Of a DNA stretch of 64,000 nucleotides, positions 1,287 to 16,269 are shown piece after piece. Location: the sequence record MW822008.1, one strand, 5' to 3'. A model generated the notes under the pieces. That model made no database searches and was not told the origin of the DNA. It worked only from the letters and a program-made list of their open reading frames with translations. Position numbers and translations under genes: made by a program. The stretch's first letter is position 1. Every line of letters begins with the position of its first letter.

Positions 1287-1294
1287 ATATCTTG

Positions 1295-1380
1295 AATTTT
1301 GGGCGTAATTTCGCACCCTCTGGGGTTTCCGCTTTCTCGCGTCTATGTAGTAATTATACGCTTTTTCAGGATCAAGTCAA
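1295..1380 (-). ncRNA. sRNA family 1 unit
   Basis: Minus-strand TTGACT-16-TATAAT (1380-1353); CGC-GAGAAA-GCG hairpin; core CCCCAGAGGGTGCG (1325-1312). Confidence 0.6.
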
Positions 1381-1756: not shown

Positions 1757-2119
1757 ATGGCGACTCAAATCACTAAAATTATTGCTAACCTGGTTAACTT
1801 TCGCGACGAGATGAAAGATCTTCCGGCAGAAACGGTAAAAATTCACATTTCAGCTTATCGGGAACTTATTGCAATGTTACCGCTTAAGCGTGAACAATAC
1901 GCCGCGACCGTGATGCTTGATGCGATGATCCATAAGATGATCGCCAGTGATTTAACGATGGTTTATCAGTATATGGGCGAAAATTTCGCGGTGTATAGTA
2001 AACCAGTACCAGGAATGGAAAGTACAGAAGTATTACACGGTTTAAATTTAAAACAAGATGCATGGGATAATATGCCTCGTTTCCTGGTATGGGCTGACAG
2101 TGGCAAAATTTACGAATAA
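1757..2119 (+). CDS. Early hypothetical protein
   Basis: ORF; start moved to the ATG after the cassette hairpin. Confidence 0.85.
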   Translation: MATQITKIIANLVNFRDEMKDLPAETVKIHISAYRELIAMLPLKREQYAATVMLDAMIHKMIASDLTMVYQYMGENFAVYSKPVPGMESTEVLHGLNLKQDAWDNMPRFLVWADSGKIYE

Positions 2120-2213
2120 GTTTAATAAAGTACTTGCAAACTAAGTTTAAAAGCGTATAATACTTTACATCAGGTGGGGAATAGTTCCCCACTATAATTA
2201 AGAGATTAATTTT

Positions 2214-2447
2214 ATGAGTACTATTTTAACTGTTTCTCAATCCGTTGCACTGACTGACCTATTAAACGCTTTAAGCCGTTGCACTGAGGTTGGCTTGTTT
2301 GATGTGGTTGACGTTGCACCGGACGTTATTAATCATTTTTGTGATGCGATGGAAGAATGTAAGGAAGATGATAGCCGTATGATGGCGGTCGCCTTTGAGG
2401 AAGTACAGCCGGGTGAGATCAAAGGTTTACCAGTACTGAAAAAATAG
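2214..2447 (+). CDS. Early hypothetical protein
   Basis: ORF after cassette promoter. Confidence 0.8.
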   Translation: MSTILTVSQSVALTDLLNALSRCTEVGLFDVVDVAPDVINHFCDAMEECKEDDSRMMAVAFEEVQPGEIKGLPVLKK

Positions 2448-2529
2448 TACTTGCAAACTAAGTTTAAAAGCGTATAATACTTTCTATCAGGTGGTGAATA
2501 GTTCCCCACTATATAAGAGGATTAAAAAA

Positions 2530-2769
2530 ATGGCTAAATCAAAAATGTTCTTAGGTCACAAAAACAAAACTCATTGGAATGTAAGCCTTTGGATTAATAA
2601 CGATGAGTCATTGTACCGGTTGGCCCAGGACTTTATTAATGATAGCACTAATCGCAATGATGCGGCCCGTCATATGATGCTATTTTTAGAACAGACTGGA
2701 CAAGATAAAACACCGGACGGATTCAAATATAGCACTACTGCGATCCGTGCGGCGATGGTTGGAATGTAA
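2530..2769 (+). CDS. Early hypothetical protein, paralog of 4570
   Basis: Shares GHKNKTxWNVSLWINNxESLYRLAQ and TPDGFKYSTTAIRAAMVGM. Confidence 0.85.
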   Translation: MAKSKMFLGHKNKTHWNVSLWINNDESLYRLAQDFINDSTNRNDAARHMMLFLEQTGQDKTPDGFKYSTTAIRAAMVGM

Positions 2770-2855
2770 TAGAATTTATTTAAAGTACTATCATTTTTTT
2801 GCGATAGTACTTTATAATAGTGTTTTATTCATACACCAACGATAAGGGTAACAGC

Positions 2856-3122
2856 ATGAATATTAAGTATTTTGCGACGCGTGAACAAGCTCGGATCGCC
2901 GCACGCCAGGACGGGGCAACGTTTAAAGATATGGGAGCGGGATCGGCAAGTGGTGAACGTTGGGCCATTGTAAAGCGTAGTACCGCCAGATCATTACAGT
3001 ACTGGTTAGCGGCGTTAAAAAGTCCCGATAGTGTATCGCGTCGAGTGGTAGAAATAAAGCTCGACCGAAAGGGCAACCGCGTGACCGTGTACCGTACTAA
3101 AAAGATTGCAGTACTTGAATAA
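2856..3122 (+). CDS. Early hypothetical protein, paralog of 15228
   Basis: Shares ATRExARIxARxxGAxFKDMG and DRKGNRVTVY. Confidence 0.8.
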   Translation: MNIKYFATREQARIAARQDGATFKDMGAGSASGERWAIVKRSTARSLQYWLAALKSPDSVSRRVVEIKLDRKGNRVTVYRTKKIAVLE

Positions 3123-3209
3123 AAAGTACTTGCAAACTATGTTTAATGGCGTATAATGTTTTACATCGAGAGCGGGAACACTTCCCGCCTATAACCTGGA
3201 GTAATAAAA

Positions 3210-3440
3210 ATGACTAATATGTATATGACTGAAGTTAAAACCGTAAAAGATACTACCACGAATAAAACTACTTACTTACAGCGGATCTGCGGTGTATGGC
3301 AACGTATCAGCAAATCAAAGTACTTTAAATTAACATCATATGCAAACCGTTCGGATTCATTCAGTACTGAAATAAAAGGTAATAAAGTACACCAATACGG
3401 CACTTATTATTATTATAGCCTGGACGCGATTGCAGTATAA
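3210..3440 (+). CDS. Early hypothetical protein
   Basis: ORF, GGAG RBS, cassette promoter. Confidence 0.8.
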   Translation: MTNMYMTEVKTVKDTTTNKTTYLQRICGVWQRISKSKYFKLTSYANRSDSFSTEIKGNKVHQYGTYYYYSLDAIAV

Positions 3441-3470
3441 GCAGTTTACAAATCTTTACAATTGCCGGTA

Positions 3471-3555
3471 TTGACTTATTTTGTCAGTACTGGCATAATG
3501 TATTCATTGGCAGATAAGCCGTAGCCCATAGGGTGCGGGAGTGTATCTATAGAAA
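3471..3555 (+). ncRNA. sRNA family 1 unit
   Basis: TTGACT-17-CATAAT; GGC-AGATAA-GCC hairpin; core CCCATAGGGTGCGGGAGTGTATCT (3525-3548). Confidence 0.6.
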
Positions 3556-3564
3556 AAGTAGTTT

Positions 3565-3643
3565 ATTACAGTTACAATTGTGCACCCGGTGGGTTAGCTG
3601 TTGTCATGGGGTATATTATGCCAGTACTTGATAATGCTGTCAA
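3565..3643 (-). ncRNA. sRNA family 1 unit
   Basis: Minus-strand TTGACA-17-CATAAT (3643-3615); core CCCACCGGGTGCACAATTGTAAC (3593-3571). Confidence 0.6.
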
Positions 3644-3723
3644 TACTTTTTTTACTATTCAGTACTGAAAACTATTTTTAAAAAGTACTTGCAAACTATG
3701 TTTAAAGGCGTATAATGTTTTAC

Positions 3724-3798
3724 ATCAGGACGGGGAACGAAATAAGTAACTCCCCGTTAAGTAGCCCAGGAGTAAGGCACACGAAAAACTCCCCTGAT
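3724..3798 (+). ncRNA. sRNA family 2 (three-way junction)
   Basis: Lies between two promoters with no ORF; stems ATCAGG/CCTGAT, ACGGGGA/TCCCCGT, GGAGT/ACTCC. Confidence 0.65.
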
Positions 3799-3866
3799 AA
3801 AATAGTTTGACAAATGTTTTTAAAAGCGTATAATACTTACATCAACTACTGAATGAGGGTTACAAA

Positions 3867-4478
3867 ATGAAAACTATCACTACTACTACTTTCGTTATGG
3901 ATTTTTCTGAATTGAACGCAGAACAAAAAACGTCAGCTATCGAACTGGTTCGGGAACGTGAAAAAAACTTAAACGATGATTATTTTTCTGAAAGTGAAAT
4001 TGAATACTATAAAGAAACAGTACTACCGGAATATGGCATTAATGACGCTGATTTACGTTTCAGTGGCTTTTGGTCCCAGGGTGACGGTGCATCAATCAGT
4101 ACTGACCACGTTGACGCAGTGAAGTTTTTACGCAAGGTAAGAGCATTAACTAAGTATCGCTCAATCCGTCACTTGCTGAATGAAGATGATTTGGCGATGA
4201 GTGTAAAGCGTTCTCACTCCCACTACTCGCATGAAAACACTGTAAGCGGGTACATTGAATCGGCTTACACTGATTTAACCGCAAAACAAGAAACGTTAGT
4301 TAATGAGCTTGAGGAACTACTCACTGAAACTATTCGTGAATTATCCCGCAAGTTGTACCGTGATTTAGAGAATGCATATGAGGATCAATTCACTACTGAA
4401 AACATTACGGCACTGATTGAGGGTAACGAATATCAATTCAATGTTATTGATGGCGTAGTAGAATCAATCGAATATTAA
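3867..4478 (+). CDS. Conserved protein of the FSGFWSQGDGA family (often auto-labelled antitoxin of TA stability system; function unproven)
   Basis: Motif FSGFWSQGDGAS and N-terminal FSELNAEQKTSAIE. Confidence 0.6.
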   Translation: MKTITTTTFVMDFSELNAEQKTSAIELVREREKNLNDDYFSESEIEYYKETVLPEYGINDADLRFSGFWSQGDGASISTDHVDAVKFLRKVRALTKYRSIRHLLNEDDLAMSVKRSHSHYSHENTVSGYIESAYTDLTAKQETLVNELEELLTETIRELSRKLYRDLENAYEDQFTTENITALIEGNEYQFNVIDGVVESIEY

Positions 4479-4569
4479 TTTAAAAAAGTACTTGCAAACT
4501 AAGTTTAAAAGCGTATAATACTTTATATCGAGGCGGGGAGTGGTTCCCCGCTCAAACGAGGATTTAAAA

Positions 4570-4809
4570 ATGGCTAGTTCTAAAACTTACAACGGGCACA
4601 AAAACAAAACTCAATGGAATGTAAGCCTTTGGATTAATAACGGTGAGTCATTGTATCGGCTTGCACAAAGTTGTATCGCACAAAGTAGAACTAAAGATAT
4701 TGCAGCGGAATGTATGTACCGCAGATTAAAAGCCAACGGTACTACTACAACGCCGGACGGTTTTAAGTATAGCACTACTGCGATCCGTGCTGCAATGGTT
4801 GGAATGTAA
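4570..4809 (+). CDS. Early hypothetical protein, paralog of 2530
   Basis: Shared motifs with 2530. Confidence 0.85.
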   Translation: MASSKTYNGHKNKTQWNVSLWINNGESLYRLAQSCIAQSRTKDIAAECMYRRLKANGTTTTPDGFKYSTTAIRAAMVGM

Positions 4810-4866
4810 TATTCAGTACTGAGATAATGGCGGGTAATAGTTCCCGCCTTTACTGAGGGTTATCTA

Positions 4867-5127
4867 ATGAGTAAAGTAATAAAGTACAATGTGTTAAGCA
4901 AATCATTGTCTATCAGTGAATGCACCGATGGTTTTTGGATGTACGATGAAACGCGTGGCATGAATTTAGCTATGCGTGCAAAAACTGCTGAGGCGGCGTA
5001 TATTCAAGCACTGGAATACTACCAGGAACGTTTAAAGGAAGTAGAAGAAGATTATAAAAGCCTCAAAGCGAAAGTAGATCATTTCGTCGGTCAATTCATC
5101 GAGGAAGACGACGACAAACAATATTGA
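4867..5127 (+). CDS. Early hypothetical protein
   Basis: ORF, GAGG RBS after hairpin. Confidence 0.8.
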   Translation: MSKVIKYNVLSKSLSISECTDGFWMYDETRGMNLAMRAKTAEAAYIQALEYYQERLKEVEEDYKSLKAKVDHFVGQFIEEDDDKQY

Positions 5128-5213
5128 AAAAGTACTTGCAATTAGTTTTCAGTACTGTATAATGGTTTACATCAAAGGGAGAAATGGTTCTCCCTGGTAA
5201 TGAGGAAAATAAA

Positions 5214-5435
5214 ATGGCTAATATCACTACTCTTTCCCAACTGGAAGCACTGGTTAAATCTATGCGGGAACATGCCGACAAAATCGGCGTACAAGATCCA
5301 GCCGTTTGCTTCTGCGACGAATTGAATGATGATACCCTGGTAATAGCAGAAGTCCAGGACGTTTCTAACTATTCATCGCGTTACACTGGCGGCGTAGCAA
5401 ATAAAGGTGACTTCTGTTTATACCTTACAAAATAA
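5214..5435 (+). CDS. Early hypothetical protein
   Basis: ORF; start after cassette hairpin. Confidence 0.8.
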   Translation: MANITTLSQLEALVKSMREHADKIGVQDPAVCFCDELNDDTLVIAEVQDVSNYSSRYTGGVANKGDFCLYLTK

Positions 5436-5440
5436 CAACG

Positions 5441-5470
5441 CGGGGAGATAATAACTCCCCGTTACTTTTT
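5441..5470 (+). terminator. Intrinsic terminator
   Basis: CGGGGAG/CTCCCCG stem then TTACTTTTT. Confidence 0.65.
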
Positions 5471-5479
5471 CAGTACTGA

Positions 5480-5570
5480 ATCATTTAATAGACGGATCTA
5501 TGCACCCGGTGGGTTAGTGACTGTTTCGTCTTGATGTAGTAATTATGCCAGTACTGGATGCACTTGTCAA
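5480..5570 (-). ncRNA. sRNA family 1 unit
   Basis: Minus-strand TTGACA-17-CATAAT (5570-5542); GAC-GAAACA-GTC hairpin; core CCCACCGGGTGCA (5513-5501). Confidence 0.6.
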
Positions 5571-5678
5571 CAACTATTTTTCAAATACTTTTTATTAAAA
5601 TACTTGCAATTAGTTTTTAAACGCGTATAATGTTTTGCATAGGGGGAGCGGTTCCCCTGGTAACTAAGGAATAATAAA

Positions 5679-5915
5679 ATGCTTGAACAAATCAAATCAA
5701 CGTCTTCGAATGTAACGGGAACGGTAGCACACTTTACTAGTGATGAATCGCGGGGCGTTCCCTATTGTGCTGTACATGTAAACACTGAGGGTAACTACTG
5801 GTTTACGGTTTACGGATCATATTCATTTGGACGGCCAGGGCATCAAAAAATTCTGGATAAAGTACAACCAACGGGTAAAAATATCACTGCTGAAATGTTT
5901 TATAAAAAATCATAA
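5679..5915 (+). CDS. Early hypothetical protein
   Basis: ORF, AGGA RBS. Confidence 0.8.
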   Translation: MLEQIKSTSSNVTGTVAHFTSDESRGVPYCAVHVNTEGNYWFTVYGSYSFGRPGHQKILDKVQPTGKNITAEMFYKKS

Positions 5916-5999
5916 AGTACTTGATAATAGTTTTTAGTACTGTATAATATTTTACATCGCAAGGGGGAGCGGTTCCCCCTGGTAACTAAGGATAATCAA

Positions 6000-6299
6000 A
6001 TGAAAATTGCAATCATCGCCCTGGCTTTATCTGTTTCCTCTTTCGCTGTTAATGCGTCATTAGATGTAAGTAGTGAAAAATTCATTCAGTGCACTGTTGC
6101 AATGACCGATGAAAGTACTGGCGAGATTGTTTTAAAGGATTTAGAGATCCAGCCGGAAGCATTTAAAAACGGGCCGTTCCATGAAGAAGACGAAAAAGGT
6201 AGCACGACAATTTATTACGATGCAAGTACTAAACGCGGTTCGGTCACTGTTATGGATACTGAGAAAGTAACTCATACTGGCGTTATTAATTGCCGTTGA
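6000..6299 (+). CDS. Exported protein with signal peptide
   Basis: MKIAIIALALSVSSFAVNA Sec-type leader. Confidence 0.75.
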   Translation: MKIAIIALALSVSSFAVNASLDVSSEKFIQCTVAMTDESTGEIVLKDLEIQPEAFKNGPFHEEDEKGSTTIYYDASTKRGSVTVMDTEKVTHTGVINCR

Positions 6300-6320
6300 T
6301 ATATACTACGGGGTAACATC

Positions 6321-6551
6321 ATGACTAAGCGAATTGTTTTACTTAACGAAAGCAGTACTACACAACTACTTAACGCCGTGCATTATGATATTGAAACGAG
6401 CGTTAATCTTATCAGTACTGTAGTACTGTTGGACACTGGAAAGGTCGCCAATGATAAAGCGATTGCAGGTATACTAACGGATCTTGAGCCTGGTAGCAGT
6501 GCATCAATAACGTTAAATGGTAAAGTGTTTAACATTTTACTTACTGATTAA
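6321..6551 (+). CDS. Early hypothetical protein
   Basis: ORF. Confidence 0.75.
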   Translation: MTKRIVLLNESSTTQLLNAVHYDIETSVNLISTVVLLDTGKVANDKAIAGILTDLEPGSSASITLNGKVFNILLTD

Positions 6552-6557
6552 GTACAT

Positions 6558-6579
6558 AGCCCACCTGGTGGGCTTTTTT
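6558..6579 (+). terminator. Intrinsic terminator
   Basis: AGCCCAC/GTGGGCT plus T-run. Confidence 0.85.
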
Positions 6580-6668
6580 GTTTTTGTAGTATCGTAGTAC
6601 TGAGATACTTTGAAAATAGTTTTAAAAAAGTAGTTGACATTACCGCAGAAAAGCGTAGAATGTATTAC

Positions 6669-6741
6669 ATCAAGACGGGGAGCACTAAGTAGACCGCCAG
6701 TAAGTCGAACGAAAAACTGGACACGTCGAGAAAACTTTGAT
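6669..6741 (+). ncRNA. sRNA family 2 variant forming the 5' leader of gene 6785
   Basis: ATCAAG/TTTGAT closing stem, TAAGTAG linker, CCAGT/ACTGG stem with AAG-N4-ACGAAAA loop. Confidence 0.55.
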
Positions 6742-6784
6742 ACACTAATAAACGTAAACTAAACTTTAATTGAGGATTTATAAA

Positions 6785-7267
6785 ATGGCTAATGTAAAAT
6801 CATTCATCAAAGCACTGGTAGCAAATGAAACTAACGTCGCGGCTGAGATCCTGGCTGAACTGGATAACGATACCATGAAAGCGGTACGCAATAATTTTAA
6901 CATCGCGTACAGTACTGCGAAAGAACTACAAGCAAATAAAGCGGCAGAAATTGAAGCGGCAAAGGCGGCCCGTGAAGCAGAACTACAAGCAACAATCGAA
7001 AGTATTCAGGCGGCAGTAGTTGGATTGGATCTGGAAGTAGTTACAGAGATGGCACAAAAAGCCCTGGCGGTTAAGTATGGGGAAGACAAGCCAGAAGTAA
7101 AAGCCAAAAAATGGATTCAGGAACGCGTAGCGGTAGTACTGGACAACGGGGAAGAATATCTGATTCCGGTGCGTGGTAACTGCATTGCGGTAGTACTGGA
7201 CGCGATTAACTCCAGTGGTATGACTCGCGAGGAATGGATCGAAGCTCATCGCAAAGTTGAAGCATAA
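6785..7267 (+). CDS. H-NS-like protein (tentative)
   Basis: Ala/Glu coiled coil, GLD linker, C-terminal DNGE..RGN..AV...A....G.....W, resembling the H-NS DNA-binding domain by eye. Confidence 0.45.
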   Translation: MANVKSFIKALVANETNVAAEILAELDNDTMKAVRNNFNIAYSTAKELQANKAAEIEAAKAAREAELQATIESIQAAVVGLDLEVVTEMAQKALAVKYGEDKPEVKAKKWIQERVAVVLDNGEEYLIPVRGNCIAVVLDAINSSGMTREEWIEAHRKVEA

Positions 7268-7288
7268 CAATTAAAGTACTGAATCACT

Positions 7289-7314
7289 AGCCCACTTATA
7301 CAGTGGGCTTTTTT
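7289..7314 (+). terminator. Intrinsic terminator
   Basis: AGCCCACT/AGTGGGCT plus T-run. Confidence 0.85.
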
Positions 7315-7333
7315 GTGTTTATCGTTTACCAGG

Positions 7334-7424
7334 CCACCAGCACCGCCTAGAAACGATTCTAACGCATTAAACTGATTATCTGATGCATCACCCTAGCTGG
7401 TGGCGTTAAGGTCGTTAGAATGCG
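7334..7424. other. Intergenic island with an inverted Chi pair and ATTCTAACG/CGTTAGAAT inverted repeat
   Basis: CCACCAGC 7334-7341, GCTGGTGG 7396-7403, arms at 7356 and 7413. Confidence 0.75.
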
Positions 7425-7551
7425 ATTGAGTGCGTTTAAAGTATTTTACAAAAAGTAATAAAAAGTACTTGCACGATTAAGAGATTAGCGTATAATGTTT
7501 TACATCGAGAGGGGGAAACGGTTCTCCTTCCAAATCAAAGGAATCAAAACA

Positions 7552-7779
7552 ATGGCTATTATCATTACTCGCGTATCTGGTACTACTGGCAACGAACAAG
7601 TAGTTGCAGTCATTACCAACAAGGAAGGTGCGGAATTGCAAAATGCAATGAATACCTGGGCCGTTAATGAGTTCGGTCAGTGGGCAAGTGTAGCATACAT
7701 TGAAACCTATCAAGTGCCGTCGATTAGTTTAACTGATTTGGGCGTTGAGCGTATCCTTTGCCTTGATGAATTAAATTAA
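7552..7779 (+). CDS. Early hypothetical protein
   Basis: ORF; start after hairpin. Confidence 0.8.
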   Translation: MAIIITRVSGTTGNEQVVAVITNKEGAELQNAMNTWAVNEFGQWASVAYIETYQVPSISLTDLGVERILCLDELN

Positions 7780-7865
7780 AAAAGTACTTGCAAAGTAAAT
7801 CGAATAAAGTATAATACATTACATCAAGGGGAGAAAATGGTTCTCCCCACTACAAGGAAACTAAA

Positions 7866-8009
7866 ATGAAAACTTGTCAATGTGGTCAGAAATCTATTAC
7901 GGGTTTAAAGCGGGGCGTTGCTCTTTGCCAGTACCATTATAATTTACAAGTATGGGGTAAAGAATGGGCCGACCAGGTGGAAGCAGCAAAGAAAGCAAAA
8001 AGTAAGTAA
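7866..8009 (+). CDS. 47-aa Cys/His (zinc-finger-like) protein, below ORF-track cutoff
   Basis: MKTCQCGQKSITGLKRGVALCQYH...; AGGA RBS; cassette promoter. Confidence 0.7.
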   Translation: MKTCQCGQKSITGLKRGVALCQYHYNLQVWGKEWADQVEAAKKAKSK

Positions 8010-8088
8010 AAATATTATCACAGTACTATTGACATAGTTTGATAGTACTGGCATAATAGATTTTATCAAGACGACTAAGGAAAACAAA

Positions 8089-8301
8089 ATGGCTATCATT
8101 ACAAAAATCAAAGTAAACAAATCACTGGTTAAACTTGAACAAGTGAAAGCAGGTTATAAAGTATCGTGGTGCGGTATGTATCGGATGTTCGCAGATATTG
8201 ATGAAGCGATCAATTATTACAGCGACACGGTTAAAAACTTTGTTCGTGCTGATGTGGTTATGGCAGTGGCAGCACATAAAGCAGCGAAAGAAAGTAAGTA
8301 A
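8089..8301 (+). CDS. Early hypothetical protein, likely paralog of 11203
   Basis: MAIIxK start, YxVS and DEA pattern, same promoter class. Confidence 0.8.
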   Translation: MAIITKIKVNKSLVKLEQVKAGYKVSWCGMYRMFADIDEAINYYSDTVKNFVRADVVMAVAAHKAAKESK

Positions 8302-8390
8302 AAATATTATCACAGTACTATTGACATAGTTTGATAGTACTGGCATAATAGATTTTATCAAGACAACATATTAATTTAAGGAATACAAAA

Positions 8391-8714
8391 ATGGCTAAAA
8401 CTATCATTAACACCGTTTCCCTGGCTGCAATCCGTGCAATCAATGTTGACGGTAAACGTTGGACTGATTCATATGGCAATACTTATCATTCTTGTCATGT
8501 AAGCGTTGAACTGGATAACGGTTTGAATGATCTGGCGGTTGAATCATTTACTTATGGCTATGAAGATGCATATCAACAAACGGCGTTAGATCTCTTAAAG
8601 GAATCAGTAGACGGGCTTAATACTGATGAAACCTCCCTTACTCGTTTGTGCAATGATCTTAATATCCCGTTGCATTGTACTGTACAGAATGTTAAACGCA
8701 AAAAAGATCTTTAA
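8391..8714 (+). CDS. Early hypothetical protein, paralog of 14809
   Basis: RWTDSxGNTYHSCxVS, FTYGY, VKRKKD. Confidence 0.85.
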   Translation: MAKTIINTVSLAAIRAINVDGKRWTDSYGNTYHSCHVSVELDNGLNDLAVESFTYGYEDAYQQTALDLLKESVDGLNTDETSLTRLCNDLNIPLHCTVQNVKRKKDL

Positions 8715-8794
8715 TTAGCTTTACTTTATGCAGATACTTTGATATAGTGTCTGCATAGGGGAAAGAAATTAAATTAACTTAAGAGGATCGTATA

Positions 8795-9064
8795 ATGAAA
8801 AATATCAGTACTTTAATCGATGCAGGTACACATGTTCGGCGGTCTATGGTTGCAACCAGTACTACAAAACAAGTAGCGAGCGGTTATCTTGTATTTGTGC
8901 ACGATGGTAAACTCCTGGAACGTTCAATCAATTTTGATGTTAAAAACAATTGCCGTTTTATTATCTTTAAGCGTGAACAATATAAAATTGATTTACCAGC
9001 GAAGCCCATAAGCGGGGCGTACAACGTGCAATCATTGTTTGAGCGTCAACCTTACACCTATTAA
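8795..9064 (+). CDS. Early hypothetical protein
   Basis: ORF, GAGG RBS. Confidence 0.8.
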   Translation: MKNISTLIDAGTHVRRSMVATSTTKQVASGYLVFVHDGKLLERSINFDVKNNCRFIIFKREQYKIDLPAKPISGAYNVQSLFERQPYTY

Positions 9065-9115
9065 TCAAAACATCGTTAGCGGTCGTTTAAGGCCGCTTAT
9101 ATTGGGGATTATACC

Positions 9116-9388
9116 ATGAACGTTAATCAAGTACTGAATGAGATCGAAAGCATCATTAAACCGATGAAGCGTACTGATGCTATGTTAACACCGGAAGAAA
9201 GCCGCCTATATGAGCGTTACAGCGTCGAACAAGTCCAGGCAATGGCTATGGCTACGCCAGCCGTTAAACCGCCTGAGAATGCGTTACAGGACGTTACAGG
9301 GGATTATATCATTAATCCAGTACTAGGGAAGATGCCGCCAATCACCGAAGAACAAAAAGACTATTTGAGTCAGTACTTAAAAGGTTAA
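9116..9388 (+). CDS. Early hypothetical protein
   Basis: ORF. Confidence 0.75.
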   Translation: MNVNQVLNEIESIIKPMKRTDAMLTPEESRLYERYSVEQVQAMAMATPAVKPPENALQDVTGDYIINPVLGKMPPITEEQKDYLSQYLKG

Positions 9389-9393
9389 TTAAT

Positions 9394-9603
9394 ATGCTTA
9401 CTGTACAGGATAAGATCGACATCTTAAAGGTTAATATGTATGTGATTGATGCCGTACCTGGTAAAGTATTTGCATACGATGATTCTAATCGCAGTCCTTT
9501 CTATTGTAGTCATGTAGTTGGATACGTGCCGTTGGCGTATGTTATCGAAAGAGTGGTTGATGCAGCATACAATCATTTTTTAGAAAATAATACTTGCAAT
9601 TAG
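9394..9603 (+). CDS. Early hypothetical protein
   Basis: ORF. Confidence 0.75.
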   Translation: MLTVQDKIDILKVNMYVIDAVPGKVFAYDDSNRSPFYCSHVVGYVPLAYVIERVVDAAYNHFLENNTCN

Positions 9604-9672
9604 TTTTTAAACGCGTATAATGTTTTACATGAAGGGGAGAAATGATTCTCCCCACTAATTAAGGAATATGAA

Positions 9673-9819
9673 ATGAAAGCATCAAAAAAGAGTAATACCA
9701 AGAAAGCATGTTCACCTTTCGCTGGGGTATTCCCTTTACGTTTCGTTGATGAAGTGGTTTCCTACCCGCTGGGCCTTACTCCTGAGATGGTAGAAAGTTT
9801 GCGTAAATCTAAAAAATAA
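9673..9819 (+). CDS. 48-aa early protein
   Basis: Translated by hand (MKASKKSNTKK...); AAGGA RBS; cassette promoter. Confidence 0.65.
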   Translation: MKASKKSNTKKACSPFAGVFPLRFVDEVVSYPLGLTPEMVESLRKSKK

Positions 9820-9900
9820 TACTTGCAATTAGTTTTCAGTACTGTATAATAGTTTACATGAAGGGGAGAAATGATTCTCCCCAATAACAGGAGAAACAAA

Positions 9901-10053
9901 ATGAAACAATACAACGCTCGGTTTGATGTTACTATCGGCAACGGCAAAGGTCAATTCTCTTTCAGTACTCGCCGCAGTTATACAGAAAACTTCCTGCGAA
10001 ATTGTGCACTGACCGCCGCACAAATTAAACATTACTTCCAGGCTAAAAAATGA
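9901..10053 (+). CDS. 50-aa early protein
   Basis: ORF; AGGAG RBS after hairpin. Confidence 0.75.
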   Translation: MKQYNARFDVTIGNGKGQFSFSTRRSYTENFLRNCALTAAQIKHYFQAKK

Positions 10054-10139
10054 AATCATTAGCTTATTACAGTTCGGCGGTGATCGGTGCATTGATCGCG
10101 GCATTGTTAGTAACCTATCTATTCTTTATGGTGATTTAA
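10050..10139 (+). CDS. 29-aa membrane peptide
   Basis: ATGA overlap with upstream gene; hydrophobic AVIGALIAALLVTYLFFMVI. Confidence 0.55.
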   Translation: MKSLAYYSSAVIGALIAALLVTYLFFMVI

Positions 10140-10259
10140 ATGAATCCTAACGGTTTAATTTACAGTACTACTAAAACGAAAGCAGATAAAGCGAAAGTAA
10201 AGGAGTACATTAAGCAAGGCATGACGCGAAAGGCGGCAGTACTGAAAGCTAAAAAATAA
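10140..10259 (+). CDS. 39-aa basic peptide
   Basis: Abuts upstream stop; followed by terminator. Confidence 0.55.
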   Translation: MNPNGLIYSTTKTKADKAKVKEYIKQGMTRKAAVLKAKK

Positions 10260-10272
10260 ATGAAAAAAGTGG

Positions 10273-10360
10273 TTGACTTCGGTCAGCCATTTTGCTATTA
10301 TATATTCATTGAGAGATAGCTCACTAGCCCACCGGGTGCATAAGTGTATCTATTATATAA
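10273..10360 (+). ncRNA. sRNA family 1 unit
   Basis: TTGACT-17-TATTAT; TGAG-AGATAG-CTCA hairpin; core CCCACCGGGTGCATAAGTGTATCT (10328-10351). Confidence 0.6.
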
Positions 10361-10473
10361 GTATTGAGTACTGAGAACTATTTTTAAAAAGTACTTGCAA
10401 ACTATCTCAATTGGCGTATAATGTTTTACATCGAGAGGGGGAACGGTTTCCCCTGGTAATAAGGAAACGAATC

Positions 10474-10815
10474 ATGACTATCTCAATTGCTCAATCTAAC
10501 TTTGAAAATGAAATCATCGCCCAGGCACTGCGTTTAAATGATGGTCGGGCCGAAATTAATTACGGTTTCAATTCAGGCGGTTGTGAAAACTATCAGTACT
10601 TTGTAACTGCTGATGGCGGTGTCCTGGGCATCAATACCGTTATTGTAAACATTCAGAAAATTAATTTCAATGATCCAGACGATAGCCAGTTTTACATTGT
10701 AGGCGTAGACGTGAACTATGAGGATGACTCACTAACTGATGATCACACTGGCGAGAAGTTAGAAAGTGCATACGGTGAAGATGATTATCAGTCCGGTCCA
10801 GAAGATTTTGAATAA
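10474..10815 (+). CDS. Early acidic hypothetical protein
   Basis: ORF; start after hairpin. Confidence 0.8.
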   Translation: MTISIAQSNFENEIIAQALRLNDGRAEINYGFNSGGCENYQYFVTADGGVLGINTVIVNIQKINFNDPDDSQFYIVGVDVNYEDDSLTDDHTGEKLESAYGEDDYQSGPEDFE

Positions 10816-10906
10816 TATTAAAAAATAGTTTGACAATAGATTATAGTACTGTATAATAAGTTACATCAAGGGGAGAATAGTTCTCCCCACTAACAGAGAA
10901 AACAAA

Positions 10907-11119
10907 ATGGCTAATATCTGCACTGTACTGAAAAATGCAAAACAAGTTTTATTTTCTGACCACGATTATTTTAATAAAGATATTACAGGCGTTCGGAATA
11001 TCAAAGATGTAAAAAGTGTTATGGGTATCTATTGCAATATGAAACGTGTTGGAACGTTCGGCGACAAAGTACTATACCAGGCAGGGGATTACAATTTTAC
11101 ACTGACTATCATTAACTAA
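10907..11119 (+). CDS. Early hypothetical protein
   Basis: ORF. Confidence 0.8.
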   Translation: MANICTVLKNAKQVLFSDHDYFNKDITGVRNIKDVKSVMGIYCNMKRVGTFGDKVLYQAGDYNFTLTIIN

Positions 11120-11202
11120 AAATATTATCACAGTACTATTGACATAGTTTGATAGTACTGACATAATAACTTTTATCAACTACACTACTAAGGAATTAAA
11201 AA

Positions 11203-11382
11203 ATGGCTATCATCGCAAAAACTGAAATCGTTGGTCTGGATTCTATCATCATGACGTTTGAAGATCAAAAAGGTATGTATGTAGTTTCATATGGTGATTA
11301 TGTTCGGGAGTATGAAACGGTAGACGAAGCCTTTGAAAGTTATATTCGCCAGGTGAATAAAGCATACGACGACTACCGCTAA
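11203..11382 (+). CDS. 59-aa early protein, likely paralog of 8089
   Basis: Translated by hand; AAGGA RBS. Confidence 0.75.
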   Translation: MAIIAKTEIVGLDSIIMTFEDQKGMYVVSYGDYVREYETVDEAFESYIRQVNKAYDDYR

Positions 11383-11481
11383 AATATATTACCAGTACTA
11401 TTAAAGTTATTGACATAGTTTGATAGTACTGTATAATAAGTTTTATAAACAGTAGTTAACTTAACCTAAGAGAGAAATAAA

Positions 11482-11625
11482 ATGATCGCACTGGATTCAT
11501 TCATCGACGCAGTACTGGCAAAAACTGGCGAGGATCTGACCGCAGAACAATACGCGATGATCGAGCAATGTCAGCAAAACGGTAAATCGGTGAAAGATAC
11601 TGTTAAGATTATCCGCAAGATGTAA
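11482..11625 (+). CDS. 47-aa early protein
   Basis: Translated by hand; own promoter and terminator. Confidence 0.7.
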   Translation: MIALDSFIDAVLAKTGEDLTAEQYAMIEQCQQNGKSVKDTVKIIRKM

Positions 11626-11631
11626 GATTAT

Positions 11632-11660
11632 AGCCCACTGGTTAACGCTGGTGGGCTTTA
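11632..11660 (+). terminator. Terminator containing a Chi site
   Basis: AGCCCAC/GTGGGCT arms; GCTGGTGG at 11647-11654. Confidence 0.65.
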
Positions 11661-11730
11661 ATCCTTTACCCTATACAATGTCAGTACTAAACCGTTTATC
11701 TCATTAGAATGCGTTACAGGACGTTTGACA

Positions 11731-11928
11731 ATGATTAGCATGAAATCAGTACAAAAACAAATAGAAACATTATCAAAAATTAAACGTAAACAGTACTCGT
11801 TAGAATATACAATCAATGGTAACTATCATCTAATGAAAGAGAATAATTTTATCGTCATTGATGAATCATTGCAAGTTATTAGTATAGTACTGAAAGCATT
11901 AATTAATGATAGAAAAAAATTAAAATAA
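11731..11928 (+). CDS. Basic hypothetical protein
   Basis: ORF. Confidence 0.6.
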   Translation: MISMKSVQKQIETLSKIKRKQYSLEYTINGNYHLMKENNFIVIDESLQVISIVLKALINDRKKLK

Positions 11929-11932
11929 TCTA

Positions 11933-12015
11933 TTGACAATATCCTCCAGTACTGGCATAATACTTACATCAAGACGAGAACGTCACTAACCCATAGGGTG
12001 CACAAATGTAACTGT
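11933..12015 (+). ncRNA. sRNA family 1 unit
   Basis: TTGACA-17-CATAAT; GACG-AGAA-CGTC hairpin; core CCCATAGGGTGCACAAATGTAAC (11990-12012). Confidence 0.6.
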
Positions 12016-12259
12016 ATAATATTGATCAAAAAATGATCTGATCAATACTTGATCAATTTGCGTAAAGTAGTATAATTCTATGCAGTTGGTTAGACGAAAG
12101 GTTATGATTAGTAGTGCAAGTGTATAAAAATTTTCATGGTGTATCGTTCCGCACATATGGCAATGAATATGTGGTATCATGTGGATTGGAAAAAGTAAGA
12201 ACAAGTAATATTATTGTCGCATTACAGTACTATAGTATTTTTATAATGAGGTTAAAATA

Positions 12260-12517
12260 ATGGCTGTAGGATTCGCGAAAGATGGGGCCGAACAAGACGA
12301 GATTAACGCAGTGATTCAGGCCGCCGTTAACCACGCTAGAAAGCAAATTAACGCACAAATAGAATCACTGATACATTGCCTCGACTGCGGCGATATAATC
12401 CCTGAGAAACGACGCCAGGCCGTTAAGGGATGTAAGTACTGCATAACTTGCCAGGAGGATCATGATAGTACTTTTAAACGTCCCCCGCGTAATTGTTGGC
12501 ATAGATCTATGAGATAA
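12260..12517 (+). CDS. DksA/TraR C4 zinc-finger protein (YbiI-like)
   Basis: MAVGFAKDGAEQDEI N-terminus; CLDCGDIIPEKRRQAVKGCKYCITCQ. Confidence 0.9.
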   Translation: MAVGFAKDGAEQDEINAVIQAAVNHARKQINAQIESLIHCLDCGDIIPEKRRQAVKGCKYCITCQEDHDSTFKRPPRNCWHRSMR

Positions 12518-12592
12518 AAAGTATTGACAGTACTATCCAGTAGTGTTATAGTACTTACATCAAGGGGAAACATCTTCCCCTACTAAGAGGAA

Positions 12593-12787
12593 ATGAAAAT
12601 GGAAAACTTATCAAGTATTTTAGTACAAGATGATTTCGGTAATCCTGGAAGTGCTATCATTGTTCGGGGTAATAAAGCAACATTTGTTATTGCTGGTGGA
12701 CCTGTACAGCGTAGCATTAAAAACAATGCCGTTACTATTAATAATGTACGCTATCGCTTAGATAAAGAATTGATTCATAAACTGTAA
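12593..12787 (+). CDS. Early hypothetical protein
   Basis: ORF. Confidence 0.75.
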   Translation: MKMENLSSILVQDDFGNPGSAIIVRGNKATFVIAGGPVQRSIKNNAVTINNVRYRLDKELIHKL

Positions 12788-12814
12788 TATTAATTTAATA
12801 GAGGATAACAATAA

Positions 12815-13138
12815 ATGTACATTCATACTACTATCACAAAGGAAGTCCGTTGCCAGTTCGAAAGTATTCCGGGCGTATGTTTCATCACTGGTACGTTTTC
12901 CCCTGGTGATCGTGATAATCCAGTACTGTTACAATTACGCCATCCATCATGGGATAAAGCATTTGATCTACCGTTGAATGAATTCGCAACTACTGCTGAA
13001 AAGTACATTAAAAATATTCGCGAGAATGATCGACTATTCATTAATGCTTTCAGTGATTCCGCGTTAAGCGAGATCCACAGCGTATTGGTTGCAATCATGG
13101 AATCAATGGAGAAAACTAAATTCAAACAAGGTGAATAA
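12815..13138 (+). CDS. Early hypothetical protein
   Basis: ORF, GAGG RBS. Confidence 0.8.
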   Translation: MYIHTTITKEVRCQFESIPGVCFITGTFSPGDRDNPVLLQLRHPSWDKAFDLPLNEFATTAEKYIKNIRENDRLFINAFSDSALSEIHSVLVAIMESMEKTKFKQGE

Positions 13139-13221
13139 AAACTATTGACAAGATAATCTAGTACTGTATAATAAGTTACATGAAGGGGAGAAATGATTCT
13201 CCCCACTGAGAGGAAAGAAAA

Positions 13222-13434
13222 ATGCAAGGTCAACTAATCGTTCGTAAATGGTCTGATACTAACGCTAAACCGTGGGATGTACAATACATCGGACCGGATG
13301 GGGTATCACGTTATCAGCCTGGCGTAACGCATAGTACTGAGCAATATGCCGCCGCTCACCGCGAACGCCTGTTAGAATCCATGAAACAGGGATACGGTGA
13401 AAAATTCATTCAAGATCATTGGCTGAAAGATTAA
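13222..13434 (+). CDS. Early hypothetical protein
   Basis: ORF, GAGG RBS. Confidence 0.8.
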   Translation: MQGQLIVRKWSDTNAKPWDVQYIGPDGVSRYQPGVTHSTEQYAAAHRERLLESMKQGYGEKFIQDHWLKD

Positions 13435-13451
13435 TATAAGGAGTACAGCTT

Positions 13452-13544
13452 ATGCAAATGAATCCGATGATTATTGTGTTAGCTGTACTTATGATCATTC
13501 ATGCAATAGTAAAAGTATTAACGCAATCAGGAGTAATAAAATGA
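13452..13544 (+). CDS. 30-aa membrane peptide
   Basis: AAGGAG RBS; hydrophobic. Confidence 0.55.
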   Translation: MQMNPMIIVLAVLMIIHAIVKVLTQSGVIK

Positions 13545-13714
13545 TTCAAGTAGAATTATCAGTACTGAAAGATCTGTTTTATCGGTTAGGTACTACTGGC
13601 GAGTATCCTAAAAGTGATACCGCAAAACTTTTTGTATCACTCGACTTATGGCAACGCGAACAATTAGTAATGTCCTGGCGTAAAGGTAAAGCAGATAGCG
13701 AGGTGAAAGCATGA
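13541..13714 (+). CDS. 57-aa early protein
   Basis: AGGAG RBS; ATGA overlaps at both ends. Confidence 0.7.
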   Translation: MIQVELSVLKDLFYRLGTTGEYPKSDTAKLFVSLDLWQREQLVMSWRKGKADSEVKA

Positions 13715-13860
13715 AAGAATTCTTATTCGAAGTAGTGTTTCAAGGTGTCGGTAGTAACCAACTGATTCGCTCAAGTGGTTATAATGTTAACCAGGCATGG
13801 AATAACATTAAACAAATGTACCCGAACGCTATCACCTATCGCAACCCGAAAGAAGTTTAA
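13711..13860 (+). CDS. 49-aa early protein
   Basis: GAGGTG RBS; ATGA overlap; terminator follows. Confidence 0.7.
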   Translation: MKEFLFEVVFQGVGSNQLIRSSGYNVNQAWNNIKQMYPNAITYRNPKEV

Positions 13861-13878
13861 AAATATTTGAAAAAGGGA

Positions 13879-13967
13879 TTGACTCCGGTCAGTCCCTTTG
13901 CTATTATATACGCATAGAAACAAATCAGCCCACAGGGTGCATAAATGTATCTATTGTTTGCTGGTGG
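13879..13967 (+). ncRNA. sRNA family 1 unit
   Basis: TTGACT-17-TATTAT; core CCCACAGGGTGCATAAATGTATCT (13929-13952); Chi at 13960. Confidence 0.6.
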
Positions 13968-14033
13968 CTAGTACTGAAAACTATTTTTAAAAAAGTACTT
14001 GCATTGTACTTAGAATCAAGTATAATGTTTTAC

Positions 14034-14106
14034 ATCAGGACGGGGAACGAAACAAGTAACCCCGTTAAGTAGTCCAGGAGTAAGACATAAGAAAACCTCC
14101 CCTGAT
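14034..14106 (+). ncRNA. sRNA family 2 (three-way junction)
   Basis: Same stems and linker as 3724; lies between two promoters with no ORF. Confidence 0.65.
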
Positions 14107-14175
14107 AAAATAGTTTGACAATAGAAAGTAAACGAGTATAATACTTACATCAACCACTGATAAGGAAACATTAAA

Positions 14176-14451
14176 ATGCGGATTCTACTGACAGCTAACG
14201 AAATCGAACAAGTACTGACTACTAACCTGGAAGACTGGAAACGTGAAGCAGATATCCAGGCGGTTCAACTGCTTAACGATAAGTTAACGCCGGATGACTT
14301 AAGCAAGATTGTAGATCCTCAATTCTACGAAGATATCCACGACACCGCGTTAAGCGTCGAGGATGTACTAGATAAGCACTACATTGATATTGATTTGCAG
14401 GTTTACGGTCGTAAAAACTTTATCACTATTCACGACATTTATAATAATTAA
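14176..14451 (+). CDS. Early acidic hypothetical protein
   Basis: ORF, AAGGA RBS. Confidence 0.8.
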   Translation: MRILLTANEIEQVLTTNLEDWKREADIQAVQLLNDKLTPDDLSKIVDPQFYEDIHDTALSVEDVLDKHYIDIDLQVYGRKNFITIHDIYNN

Positions 14452-14537
14452 GTATTGACAAAGTATCTTAGTACTGTATAATAGTTTACATCGAGAGGGG
14501 GAATGGTTCCCCTCCTAACAAAGAGAGAGAAATAAAA

Positions 14538-14720
14538 ATGGCTAAATGCACTATCTGCAAGAAAGAAATAGTATTAGTTCCAAGTGCCCGTGAACGTGCC
14601 GCTCGGTTCGGTGGCAAAGCGTCAGACTATACAAAAATGTTTACTACCCATGCAGCTTGCCAGGTAGCAAAACGTTCACAAGAAAGCGTAGAATTAATGC
14701 GTAAACTTTCCAAAAAATAA
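14538..14720 (+). CDS. Small zinc-finger-like protein
   Basis: CTIC...HAAC. Confidence 0.7.
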   Translation: MAKCTICKKEIVLVPSARERAARFGGKASDYTKMFTTHAACQVAKRSQESVELMRKLSKK

Positions 14721-14808
14721 GTATTGACAAAGTATCTTAGTACTGTATAATAGTTTACATCAAGTGAGGGGAAACGGTTCCCCTCCTAACAAAGAGAGAG
14801 AAATAAAA

Positions 14809-15132
14809 ATGGCTATGATCCTTGCCCAGAAAGTAGAACTGAAAATTGTAACCTCCTTTGACATTAAAGTTAATCGGTGGACTGATTCACACGGCAATAC
14901 TTACCACTCTTGCTACGTGTCCGCGTTAATTGGCGACCGCTGGGAAGACTTGGGACATGAAACCTTTACTTACGGTTACGGTACACAAGGAGAATACACG
15001 GGCTTGGAGATCATTAAAGAAACCGTTATAGGTTTCAACCCGAAAGAAAAAGTTATTCACCGCATCGAAAAAGAGATTAACAAAGAAATAACAGTTCGCT
15101 ACTACGATGTAAAACGTAAGAAAGACATGTAA
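14809..15132 (+). CDS. Early hypothetical protein, paralog of 8391
   Basis: Shared motifs with 8391. Confidence 0.85.
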   Translation: MAMILAQKVELKIVTSFDIKVNRWTDSHGNTYHSCYVSALIGDRWEDLGHETFTYGYGTQGEYTGLEIIKETVIGFNPKEKVIHRIEKEINKEITVRYYDVKRKKDM

Positions 15133-15227
15133 TAGAATCCATTTAAAGTACTATTTGACATTGCCCAGATAGTACTTTATAATAGACTCTAACTTGTAGT
15201 ACTAACTCAACTAATAGGATGTATACC

Positions 15228-15623
15228 ATGATTACTAAATTCTACGCTACCCGTGAAGCTGCCCGTATTGTTGCACGCGAGGAAGGAGCAGCATTTAAAG
15301 ACATGGGCAAAGATGCACCGAAAGGTCAACGCTGGGCCGTACAGTTCAAAGAAATCTCTGATATTGTGAATTCACCTGAGCCAGTACTAACAGCAGCAGA
15401 ACTAAAACGAGCGGATTTACTGGCGGCAGTACTTAACGCACAAGATGAATTTATCGCTGATTCTGATATCAAAGTACAGACAAACCATACCGCTTGGACT
15501 CACGCGGATCACCTGGCAAACCTTAAGCGTCCAAGTGAACTGGTTCGCAACCAGAAAGAGATCCGACACGACCGTAAGGGTAATCGTGTAACAGTATACA
15601 GTAAACGCCGCCAGGTTATCTAA
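15228..15623 (+). CDS. Early hypothetical protein, paralog of 2856 with a longer middle
   Basis: Shared N- and C-terminal motifs with 2856. Confidence 0.8.
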   Translation: MITKFYATREAARIVAREEGAAFKDMGKDAPKGQRWAVQFKEISDIVNSPEPVLTAAELKRADLLAAVLNAQDEFIADSDIKVQTNHTAWTHADHLANLKRPSELVRNQKEIRHDRKGNRVTVYSKRRQVI

Positions 15624-15645
15624 TAACTTGCAGTACTAACAACAC

Positions 15646-15670
15646 GGCGGGATCAGTTCCCGCCTTTTTT
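15646..15670 (+). terminator. Intrinsic terminator
   Basis: GGCGGGA/TCCCGCC plus T6. Confidence 0.85.
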
Positions 15671-15685
15671 ATAGGATAAACTAAA

Positions 15686-15940
15686 ATGATTAAGGTACAA
15701 CTATCTAAAGATAATATCTTGCGGGTACACTATAAAGCACCACAGAGAATCATCACAAAGGCCGTACAGCTTGCTAATGAGTTTATTAATGGTAACCTAT
15801 TACCAAGGAAGTTAAGCAACGGAAAACTGCGTGTAATCGATGTAGACACTAACAACAGAATAGTAATTGAGAACACAGGAAAGATAAACCTATATGAACA
15901 CCAACAATATAATAAGAAAATAAAACTAATATCACGTTGA
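15686..15940 (+). CDS. ParE/RelE-like toxin-fold protein (tentative)
   Basis: 84 aa, basic; KA..L...F..G...PR.L......I.V....R......G...L..H..YN pattern. Confidence 0.45.
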   Translation: MIKVQLSKDNILRVHYKAPQRIITKAVQLANEFINGNLLPRKLSNGKLRVIDVDTNNRIVIENTGKINLYEHQQYNKKIKLISR

Positions 15941-15993
15941 CAGTACTCAATTGTTTTAGTATTATGTACACATACCAACACGGGAGAAACAAA

Positions 15994-16212: not shown

Positions 16213-16269
16213 TTGACAGTACTCAAATGTTTTAGTACTATATGTACATACCAACACGGGGAAAACAAA

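Follow-up and report, generated by a model that had tools for sequence, protein, structure and literature searches.

A covarying, pseudoknotted RNA element at early promoters of Escherichia phage BF17 and its counterpart in the T7 A1 leader

The DNA analysed here (the window) is the first 64000 nt of Escherichia phage BF17 (MW822008.1), a jumbo phage of the Asteriusvirus type. Its early region holds three copies of an RNA element which is, very probably, a conserved pseudoknotted non-coding module, transcribed by the sigma-70 polymerase of the host from strong promoters of the early phage genes. Judged from sequence, the BF17 copies are the jumbo-phage versions of an element in the leader of the T7 A1 transcript, and the promoter-plus-RNA unit is mobile between unrelated phage families. 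The RNA family is widespread and apparently undescribed, both in Rfam and in the literature searched.

The three copies, with the stems proposed for them in an earlier note on this DNA, are present in the letters of the window at 3724-3798 (copy 1), 14034-14106 (copy 2) and 6669-6741 (copy 3), and folding agrees with the proposed stems. The core of the element consists of TAAGTAG and a hairpin with the loop TAAG-N-C-R-N-A-C-GAAAA. In a pattern scan of the window, GACGGGG-N(3-25)-TAAGTAG is matched 3 times (0.00 expected), and the 20-base core pattern TAAGTAGNCCNNNAGTAAGNNNNNNGAAAA is matched by the three copies only, with up to 3 mismatches allowed (0.00 expected). The parts of the copies are listed below; P1, P2 and P3 are helices, PK2 is the pseudoknot helix, and the E values come from a covariance model built from T7-like sequences only.

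3724-3798, + strand: copy 1, whole element (sequence, fold, T7-only model hit with E 6.7e-5)
3724-3729 with 3793-3798, + strand: P1 of copy 1, followed by the P2 hairpin (3730-3757) and TAAGTAG (3758-3764)
3764-3766 with 3776-3778, + strand: PK2 of copy 1 (GCC/GGC); P3 is formed by 3769-3773 with 3788-3792
3769-3792, + strand: P3 hairpin of copy 1 (GGAGT/ACTCC), with the conserved loop AAGGCACACGAAAA
14034-14106, + strand: copy 2, whole element (sequence, fold, T7-only model hit with E 1.2e-3)
14034-14039 with 14101-14106, + strand: P1 of copy 2, followed by the P2 hairpin (14040-14065) and TAAGTAG (14066-14072)
14072-14074 with 14084-14086, + strand: PK2 of copy 2 (GTC/GAC); P3 is formed by 14077-14080 with 14097-14100
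6669-6727, + strand: copy 3, without P2 (sequence, best T7-only model hit with E 1.4e-6)
6674-6677 with 6724-6727, + strand: P1 of copy 3 (GACG/CGTC); TAAGTAG lies at 6686-6692
6692-6694 with 6704-6706, + strand: PK2 of copy 3 (GAC/GTC); P3 is formed by 6697-6701 with 6716-6720 (CCAGT/ACTGG)

Copies 1 and 2 fold as a three-way junction (z of -2.9 and -2.5 against shuffles) built of the helices P1 ATCAGG/CCTGAT, P2 ACGGGG/CCCCGT and P3 GGAG(T)/(A)CTCC. Copy 3 keeps TAAGTAG and the loop, lacks P2, and has its P3 stem swapped to CCAGT/ACTGG; taken alone, it is no more stable than shuffles (z -0.1). The three-way junction proposed earlier thus describes copies 1 and 2 and not copy 3. The same junction can be drawn in 121Q, muut, outra, A73, A7_1, Munch and L161, and P2 is missing also from LTH01 and Hallingskeid. 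In the T7-like members, the 5' strand of P1 lies in the loop of a small hairpin instead of in a three-way junction. P3 varies in length between 4 and 6 bp, PK2 comprises 3 bp, and the optional P2 adjoins the invariant single-stranded UAAGUA. Unrelated phage families show hardly any variation in the unpaired segments UAAGUA, UAAG and A-C-GAAA. The recurrence of ACGAAA in the P2 loop, pointed out previously, gained no support as a meaningful feature; the segment varies in close relatives (AACGAAG, AACCAAA, AATGAAA).

Four pairings are backed by covariation, namely P3, the closing helix P1, the hairpin adjoining TAAGTAG, and the pseudoknot PK2. In the T7-like alignment, 10 of the 15 pairs show changes on both sides, with 92% of the cells paired; none of 500 shuffles equalled this value and slid controls reached 2-3. 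P3 is found there as GCCUG/CAGGC, GCCUG/CAGGU, GCUUG/CAAGC, ACCUG/CAGGU and GCCUG/CGGGC, and elsewhere as CCAGU/ACUGG (copy 3), GGAGU/ACUCC (copies 1 and 2), GCCAG/CUGGU (Munch, L161), ACUUG/CAAGU (LTH01) and CCUG/CAGG (copy 3 of EJP2, Hallingskeid). P1 occupies the same columns of the T7-like alignment as GUCAA/UUGAC, GUCAUC/GAUGAC, GUCGGU/ACCGAC and GAUUAG/CUAAUC. Outside this alignment, where P1 was assigned less rigorously, by eye or by a best-stem script, it is AUCAGG/CCUGAU, GACG/CGUC, GACGG/CCGUC, CGGC/GCCG, GCGGC/GUCGC, CAGG/CCUG (JNE01) or AUCAA/UUGAU (EJP2). At least nine distinct complementary sequences are seen for P3 and at least nine for P1. The stem swap of copy 3, first proposed as direct covariation from three copies, is real and now stands among about 40 distinct homologues; the compensatory changes bear out a structured-RNA family, and the distant homologues keep both the loop consensus and the pairing.

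The hairpin around the 5' strand of P1 in the T7-like members covaries as well (CCGG/CCGG, CCAG/CUGG, CCAC/GUGG, CGGG/CCCG). As the P1 strand is located in the loop of this hairpin, the T7-like RNAs would have either a second pseudoknot or two alternative folds in this part.

The PK2 helix was missed in the earlier note, although the stems given there were correct. The last G of UAAGUAG and the next two bases (G-N-C) pair with a G-N'-C placed right after UAA in the loop of P3. In the middle of the helix A-U, U-A and C-G pairs are seen and never a mismatch, in 13 of 13 and then in 37 of 37 distinct sequences (the 37 include the doubtful L156, which has no promoter upstream and is also included in the 43 promoter instances given below); none of 10000 shuffles was equal. 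The changes arose independently in the T7-like (SFPH2, L148) and jumbo lineages. PK2 interleaves with P3, and each of the two helices shows covariation, as expected for an H-type pseudoknot. The long crossing strand is the A-rich R-N-A-C-G-A-A-A-A, which leads back to P3. Four loop positions had earlier been taken as simply variable (N4), and their variation is accounted for by the PK2 pairing.

When the sequences are read as + strand RNA, and only then, G·U pairs appear: the T7-like alignment has seven at a single P3 pair, with others, and the P2 of 121Q has one variant (CCCUGU). Read from the opposite strand they would be C·A mismatches, so the functional molecule is the + strand RNA. A homologue of copy 2 in CMSTMSU (L175 151-223, in a record flagged UNVERIFIED_ORG) shows a deletion of 3 nt between TAAGTAG and P3; P3, PK2 and P1 can still be drawn in it.

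The relation to T7 was obtained from both directions. Copy 3, used as a query, matched the left end of T7-like phages as well as other jumbo phages. A covariance model of 17 T7-like sequences only, run over the 64-kb window with filters off, returned copy 3 (1.4e-6), copy 1 (6.7e-5) and copy 2 (1.2e-3), and the next hit had an E value of 0.55. The recovery of just these three copies by a model containing no BF17 sequence is an independent confirmation of the homology. In T7, the element GGATAAGTAGACAGCCTGATAAGTCGCACGAAAAACAGGTATTGACA occupies positions +54 to +100 of the transcript from A1, and its end falls within the A2 -35 hexamer. The leader between A1 and A2 comprises nt 498-626, with TAAGTAG at 551-557 and the P3 hairpin at ~561-587; only promoters are annotated there in the T7 record. 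The arrangement in phiA1122 is the same. The 3' strand of the closing helix coincides with the A2 -35 hexamer (TTGAC) in T7 (L129 286-291) and most relatives, and relatives without a promoter at this place (among L140, L162 and L134) keep the closing helix with other sequences.

The family of three copies described at first is real but not local to BF17: the T7 A1 leader belongs to it, and so do hundreds of other phages. Copies 1 and 2, together with both of their promoters, recur at 87-93% identity in all Asteriusvirus genomes, and the jumbo phages carry 2-3 copies each. The same unit is present in myoviruses of ~145 kb (muut, outra and EmilieFrey of Justusliebigvirus; A73, W70, A7_1 and A5-4), in which the genes after the second promoter differ. 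Further carriers are Salmonella phage Munch, Erwinia phage Hallingskeid and the Vequintavirinae phage LTH01. The core is found in T7, phiA1122 and ~25 other distinct T7-like sequences, and a pattern scan of IMG/VR gave ~30 T7-like contigs in addition to jumbo-phage contigs. For two divergent T7-like members, Pantoea phage LIMElight and Shigella phage SFPH2, the motif region matches 276 and 218 phage records, respectively, with hosts from Escherichia, Klebsiella, Salmonella, Citrobacter, Enterobacter, Yersinia, Shigella, Pantoea, Erwinia and Cronobacter. Six other loci (L026, L038, L043, L128, L144, L154) were judged chance matches.

Searches for described counterparts were negative within their scope. 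Rfam 15 gave no hit at the gathering score in the whole window; around copy 1, with E up to 10, only chance-level hits and no ToxI were obtained, and for the motif of T7, L148 and L161, with E up to 1, there were no hits, ToxI included. ARAGORN found no tRNA or tmRNA gene in the window. With ARAGORN and Rfam empty, a tRNA-like RNA and the known ribozymes and riboswitches were rejected. A pattern scan of 185,579 genomes (one per species) gave a single archaeal hit, judged to be chance, and metagenome contigs held no counterpart beyond Asteriusvirus-like ones. In the literature searched by topic, neither the RNA nor its structure is described, although a passing mention in older papers on the T3/T7 left end is possible; its sequence strings appear only in three papers, in which the T7 early-promoter fragment is printed as a construct. 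Few phages have been studied as well as T7, whose A1 promoter and leader serve as standard tools. This well-used leader holds an RNA fold with covariation in several helices, conserved across hundreds of podoviruses and in jumbo and 145-kb myoviruses of Enterobacterales.

The early region of BF17 is an array of cassettes with near-consensus sigma-70 promoters in the promoter scan of the window. The promoters and the gene associated with the element are as follows.

3689-3716, + strand: promoter of copy 1, TTGCAA-16-TATAAT (promoter scan), with the start predicted at A3724
6634-6661, + strand: promoter of copy 3, TTGACA-16-TAGAAT (promoter scan), with the start predicted at A6669
13999-14026, + strand: promoter of copy 2, TTGCAT-16-TATAAT (sequence reading and alignment), with the start predicted at A14034
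3807-3834, + strand: full-consensus promoter TTGACA-16-TATAAT directly 3' of copy 1, driving the gene at 3867-4478
14115-14142, + strand: full-consensus promoter directly 3' of copy 2, driving the gene at 14176-14451
6785-7267, + strand: gene 3' of copy 3 (160 aa, phrog_27871, no function assigned)

Each copy begins ~7 nt after the -10 hexamer. The putative starts are based on this spacing and on the homology with the start of the T7 A1 transcript: the annotated start ATCGAG (the A of ATCGAGAGGG) is homologous to the beginning of the copies. Across the family, a sigma-70 promoter matching at least 9 of 12 positions lies within 160 nt upstream on the same strand in 34 of the 43 distinct instances, as compared with 16% of random positions of the same loci. 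The distance between the -10 hexamer and TAAGTAG is 24 nt in the copy-3 type, 35-41 nt in the three-way-junction type and 57-61 nt in most T7-like members.

The element is non-coding, promoter-proximal and on the + strand, as had been proposed. Copies 1 and 2 contain no ORF that could be translated from their transcripts and run straight into an UP-like region and the -35 of a second, perfect-consensus promoter. The sole ORF is a 31-aa one starting with ATG (3715-3810); it begins inside the -10 hexamer, upstream of the predicted transcript start, and no start codon with a ribosome-binding site and a kept frame was found. A coding function is excluded by the missing start codon and by loop indels of 1, 2 and 4 nt among the homologues. 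A scan of the window gave no terminator-like site after any of the three copies, so the idea that the RNA ends just before the next promoter has no support; the same holds for a free sRNA of ~75 nt, as nothing terminates transcription ahead of that promoter. The transcripts of the copies most likely read through it.

What the RNA does is a matter of weighing several explanations. A protein-binding RNA, as suggested in the earlier note, is a reasonable candidate role. Our preferred reading, a tentative one, is that the product is the RNA as such, which would bind a conserved factor of Enterobacterales. The RNA would be produced abundantly at the 5' end of the earliest phage transcripts and might be released or trimmed to its compact fold; its invariant unpaired bases would bind a conserved Enterobacterales component, a protein or possibly a small ligand, and the bound RNA would serve as a decoy or a recruitment site. 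This reading draws on four observations. First, the unit is an orphan cassette: in five lineages, promoter and motif stand directly upstream of a complete consensus promoter and the genes beyond it differ. Second, jumbo phages carry several copies. Third, the unpaired bases are nearly invariant across unrelated phage families which have the Enterobacterales host in common, and this points to one shared host target at the first step of infection. Fourth, the only loop bases that vary are structural ones, explained by PK2, which argues against a fixed antisense seed. Base pairing as an sRNA, or regulation of one particular downstream gene, is less likely.

Several points weigh against the RNA being the product. 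As no terminator follows the motif, longer mRNAs that begin with it may be the only form in which it exists. In three jumbo genera, copy 3 and its relatives are the direct leader of one conserved gene, an arrangement that looks cis-regulatory; phrog_27871 homologues follow the same motif in Munch and Hallingskeid (L164 3658-4245; L165 2667-3293). This gene (6785-7267) had been labelled H-NS-like, a label that was dropped, as neither Pfam nor PHROGs gave a match to H-NS or to another informative domain. In 14 of 26 T7-like instances a boxA lies within 450 nt downstream on the same transcript, a hint that the motif takes part in transcription elongation. The search for a host or plasmid RNA to be mimicked was negative: 5,426 E. 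coli genomes and 72,556 plasmids hold no counterpart, and the phage model had no significant hit on the E. coli rrn leader, 16S rRNA or the spc operator. Mimicry of the rrn leader was rejected as well; the string GTCGCAAGACGAAAAA resembles only the loop variant of T7 itself and was treated as a coincidence.

The main rival, possible but rated below the product reading, is a cis-acting element that works on the transcription complex, like the put RNA of HK022 or a nut-like site. The nascent pseudoknot would bind its own polymerase or recruit an elongation factor, with resistance to pausing, Rho or terminators as the outcome. It is consistent with the position of the element ~25-130 nt from a strong host-polymerase promoter and with the boxA on the same untranslated leader of T7-like phages, which follows the motif by only 22 nt in L148. 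Intrinsic terminators are present downstream in BF17 (5440, 6558 and 7289). The HK022 put site shares with the element its promoter-proximal position, the size of ~70 nt and the lack of an ORF in a structured RNA on early phage transcripts of the host polymerase. Yet put consists of two plain stem-loops without a pseudoknot, and the BF17/T7 element, in a comparison made by description only, differs further in being followed by a strong promoter. This full-consensus promoter comes next in T7 and in most non-T7 members, so most polymerases reaching the genes would be unmodified. Moreover, no boxA (GCTCTTTAACAA-like) was found in the BF17 window or with the other non-T7 members, and we know of no terminators ahead of TE in the T7-like phages. 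As a separate observation, two terminator-like hairpins, at 6558-6574 and 7289-7309 (AGCCCAC...GTGGGCT with a T-run, strong), flank the transcription unit of copy 3.

A 5' stabiliser or processing barrier, in which the fold shields the 5' end, blocks RNase E entry or sets a processing boundary and so gives longer-lived early mRNAs, is an unlikely alternative to the RNA being a product in its own right. In the jumbo and ~145-kb phages P1 begins at +1 to +6 of the transcript, and most other early cassettes of the window open with a simple 5' hairpin, so a structured 5' end is general here. The T7-like motif, however, begins near +55, behind another 5' hairpin; a simple hairpin is evidently enough for the other cassettes; and the next promoter yields unprotected transcripts anyway. 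Stabilising hairpins of the ompA type, like the generic 5' hairpins of BF17, share with the element their place at the extreme 5' end, but they are much simpler than the element, the conserved bases of which are unpaired. Stability does not explain why ~15 unpaired bases should be invariant, nor the presence of a pseudoknot.

Small pseudoknotted folds in which many unpaired bases are invariant and the crossing strand is A-rich are typical of aptamers and small ribozymes, and the covariation-supported fold is of this kind. The element could be a ligand-binding aptamer, acting as sensor or sponge for a signalling nucleotide or a metabolite, or a ribozyme whose self-cleavage releases the leader, but this is rather improbable. 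No riboswitch platform, in the form of a terminator or a sequestered ribosome-binding site (Shine-Dalgarno), was found at the copies, where the next feature is a promoter; Rfam gave no riboswitch or ribozyme match; and cleavage of the much-used T7 A1 leader is not reported in the literature searched.

Type III antitoxins (ToxI-like) and phage pseudo-antitoxins are likewise short pseudoknotted RNAs (the core of the element is ~37 nt) with an A-rich tract and the capacity to act as decoys. They differ by their tandem repeat array, which is absent from the phage element, and the element gave no ToxI hit in Rfam. A type III antitoxin array was rejected, as only single units occur and neither a cognate array nor a similar sequence was found in the E. 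coli genomes and plasmids searched.

A mimic of the binding site of ribosomal protein S8 (16S helix 21 and the spc operator), which would titrate or recruit S8, is very improbable. The S8 site is arranged as AAGU, helix and A-N-A-C-U, with a variable middle N and an invariant second A (PMC4176348, PMC3616713), and the phage RNA has the order AAGU, the covariation-supported PK2 helix and R-N-A-C; one flanking helix, the invariant A and the G-C pair can be drawn in it. In the spc mRNA, the strands of the site are AAACUG / CAAGUC. The phage RNA has, nevertheless, an extra A between AAGU and the helix, its internal loop is 2x3 instead of 1x3, the A596-U644 pair of the base triple would be A·G, and the second flanking helix is missing. 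BF17 copy 2 and LTH01 have A in place of the C, and the phage model had no significant hit on 16S or the spc operator. The resemblance was spotted by eye and is a low-probability lead.

The last alternative, hardly credible and disfavoured already, is a decayed cassette of promoter, leader and Shine-Dalgarno sequence that has lost its ORF, or a CsrA sponge of the CsrB type as proposed in the earlier note. P2 resembles the generic 5' hairpin of the neighbouring cassettes, CCAGGAGTAAG has the look of a Shine-Dalgarno sequence in copies 1 and 2, and each of these copies has two GGA motifs. However, the apparent Shine-Dalgarno AGGAG is just one version of the P3 5' strand. AGGAG and GGA become GCCAG, GCCTG or ACTTG in copy 3, the T7-like and other jumbo members, with the pairing kept, on which ground the decayed cassette was rejected; covariation of several helices across phage families rules out a neutral remnant. 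Like CsrB and RsmZ, the element is a non-coding RNA with repeated short motifs for which protein binding is proposed, but the GGA-in-loop repeats that define these sponges are absent here. The GGA motifs lie in the P1 and P3 stems of copies 1 and 2, rather than in loops, and are lost in copy 3, the T7-like phages, Munch, LTH01 and Hallingskeid; as they are not conserved, the CsrA sponge was rejected.

A bolder and doubtful reading is that the first RNA of many virulent Enterobacteria phages, T7 included, carries a dedicated pseudoknotted decoy or aptamer which would neutralise a host component at the onset of infection, as part of a promoter-plus-RNA cassette spread horizontally between unrelated phage families. 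Candidate targets would be a nuclease or sensor of host defence, a nucleotide used in immune signalling, or a protein that is ribosomal or binds RNA globally. The question bears on the protection of early phage transcripts and on possible RNA-based counter-defence, and it is directly testable in T7 and E. coli K-12.

Further features of the region touch on the copies or their promoters. In BF17 and other records that hold both genome ends, copies 1 and 2 match at four places and copy 3 at two, and one such record labels the region as direct terminal repeats. All three copies are therefore probably located within the terminal repeat (window 1-14200 at least) and hence present twice per virion genome.

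After most early promoters (1674-17640) come a conserved ACATC start region and, directly behind it, a simple GC hairpin, which a linker separates from a ribosome-binding site and a small ORF. The hairpins are of the GGGGA-GAA-N-GTTCTCCCC type (e.g. 1711-1740, 3167-3195, 10432-10460 and 14492-14520), and they are probably the first RNA family of the earlier note or a generic 5' stabiliser. Several of the cassette transcripts start with ATCGAGAG, which are the first bases of the T7 A1 transcript. At 10266-10301 and 13872-13907 the promoter lies inside a hairpin, a 12-bp stem-loop being formed around the -35 TTGACT, with TATTAT 17 nt further on. These promoters resemble the promoter stem-loops reported for phages of the Felix O1/rV5 type.

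The repeat CCCAYAGGGTGC, a short hairpin of the GCCC/GGGU type, is present in 10 copies on both strands (0.07 expected), at 1097, 1313, 3525, 3582, 5502, 10328, 11990, 13929, 17202 and 19164. Several of these are located immediately upstream of the promoters of copies 1 and 2.

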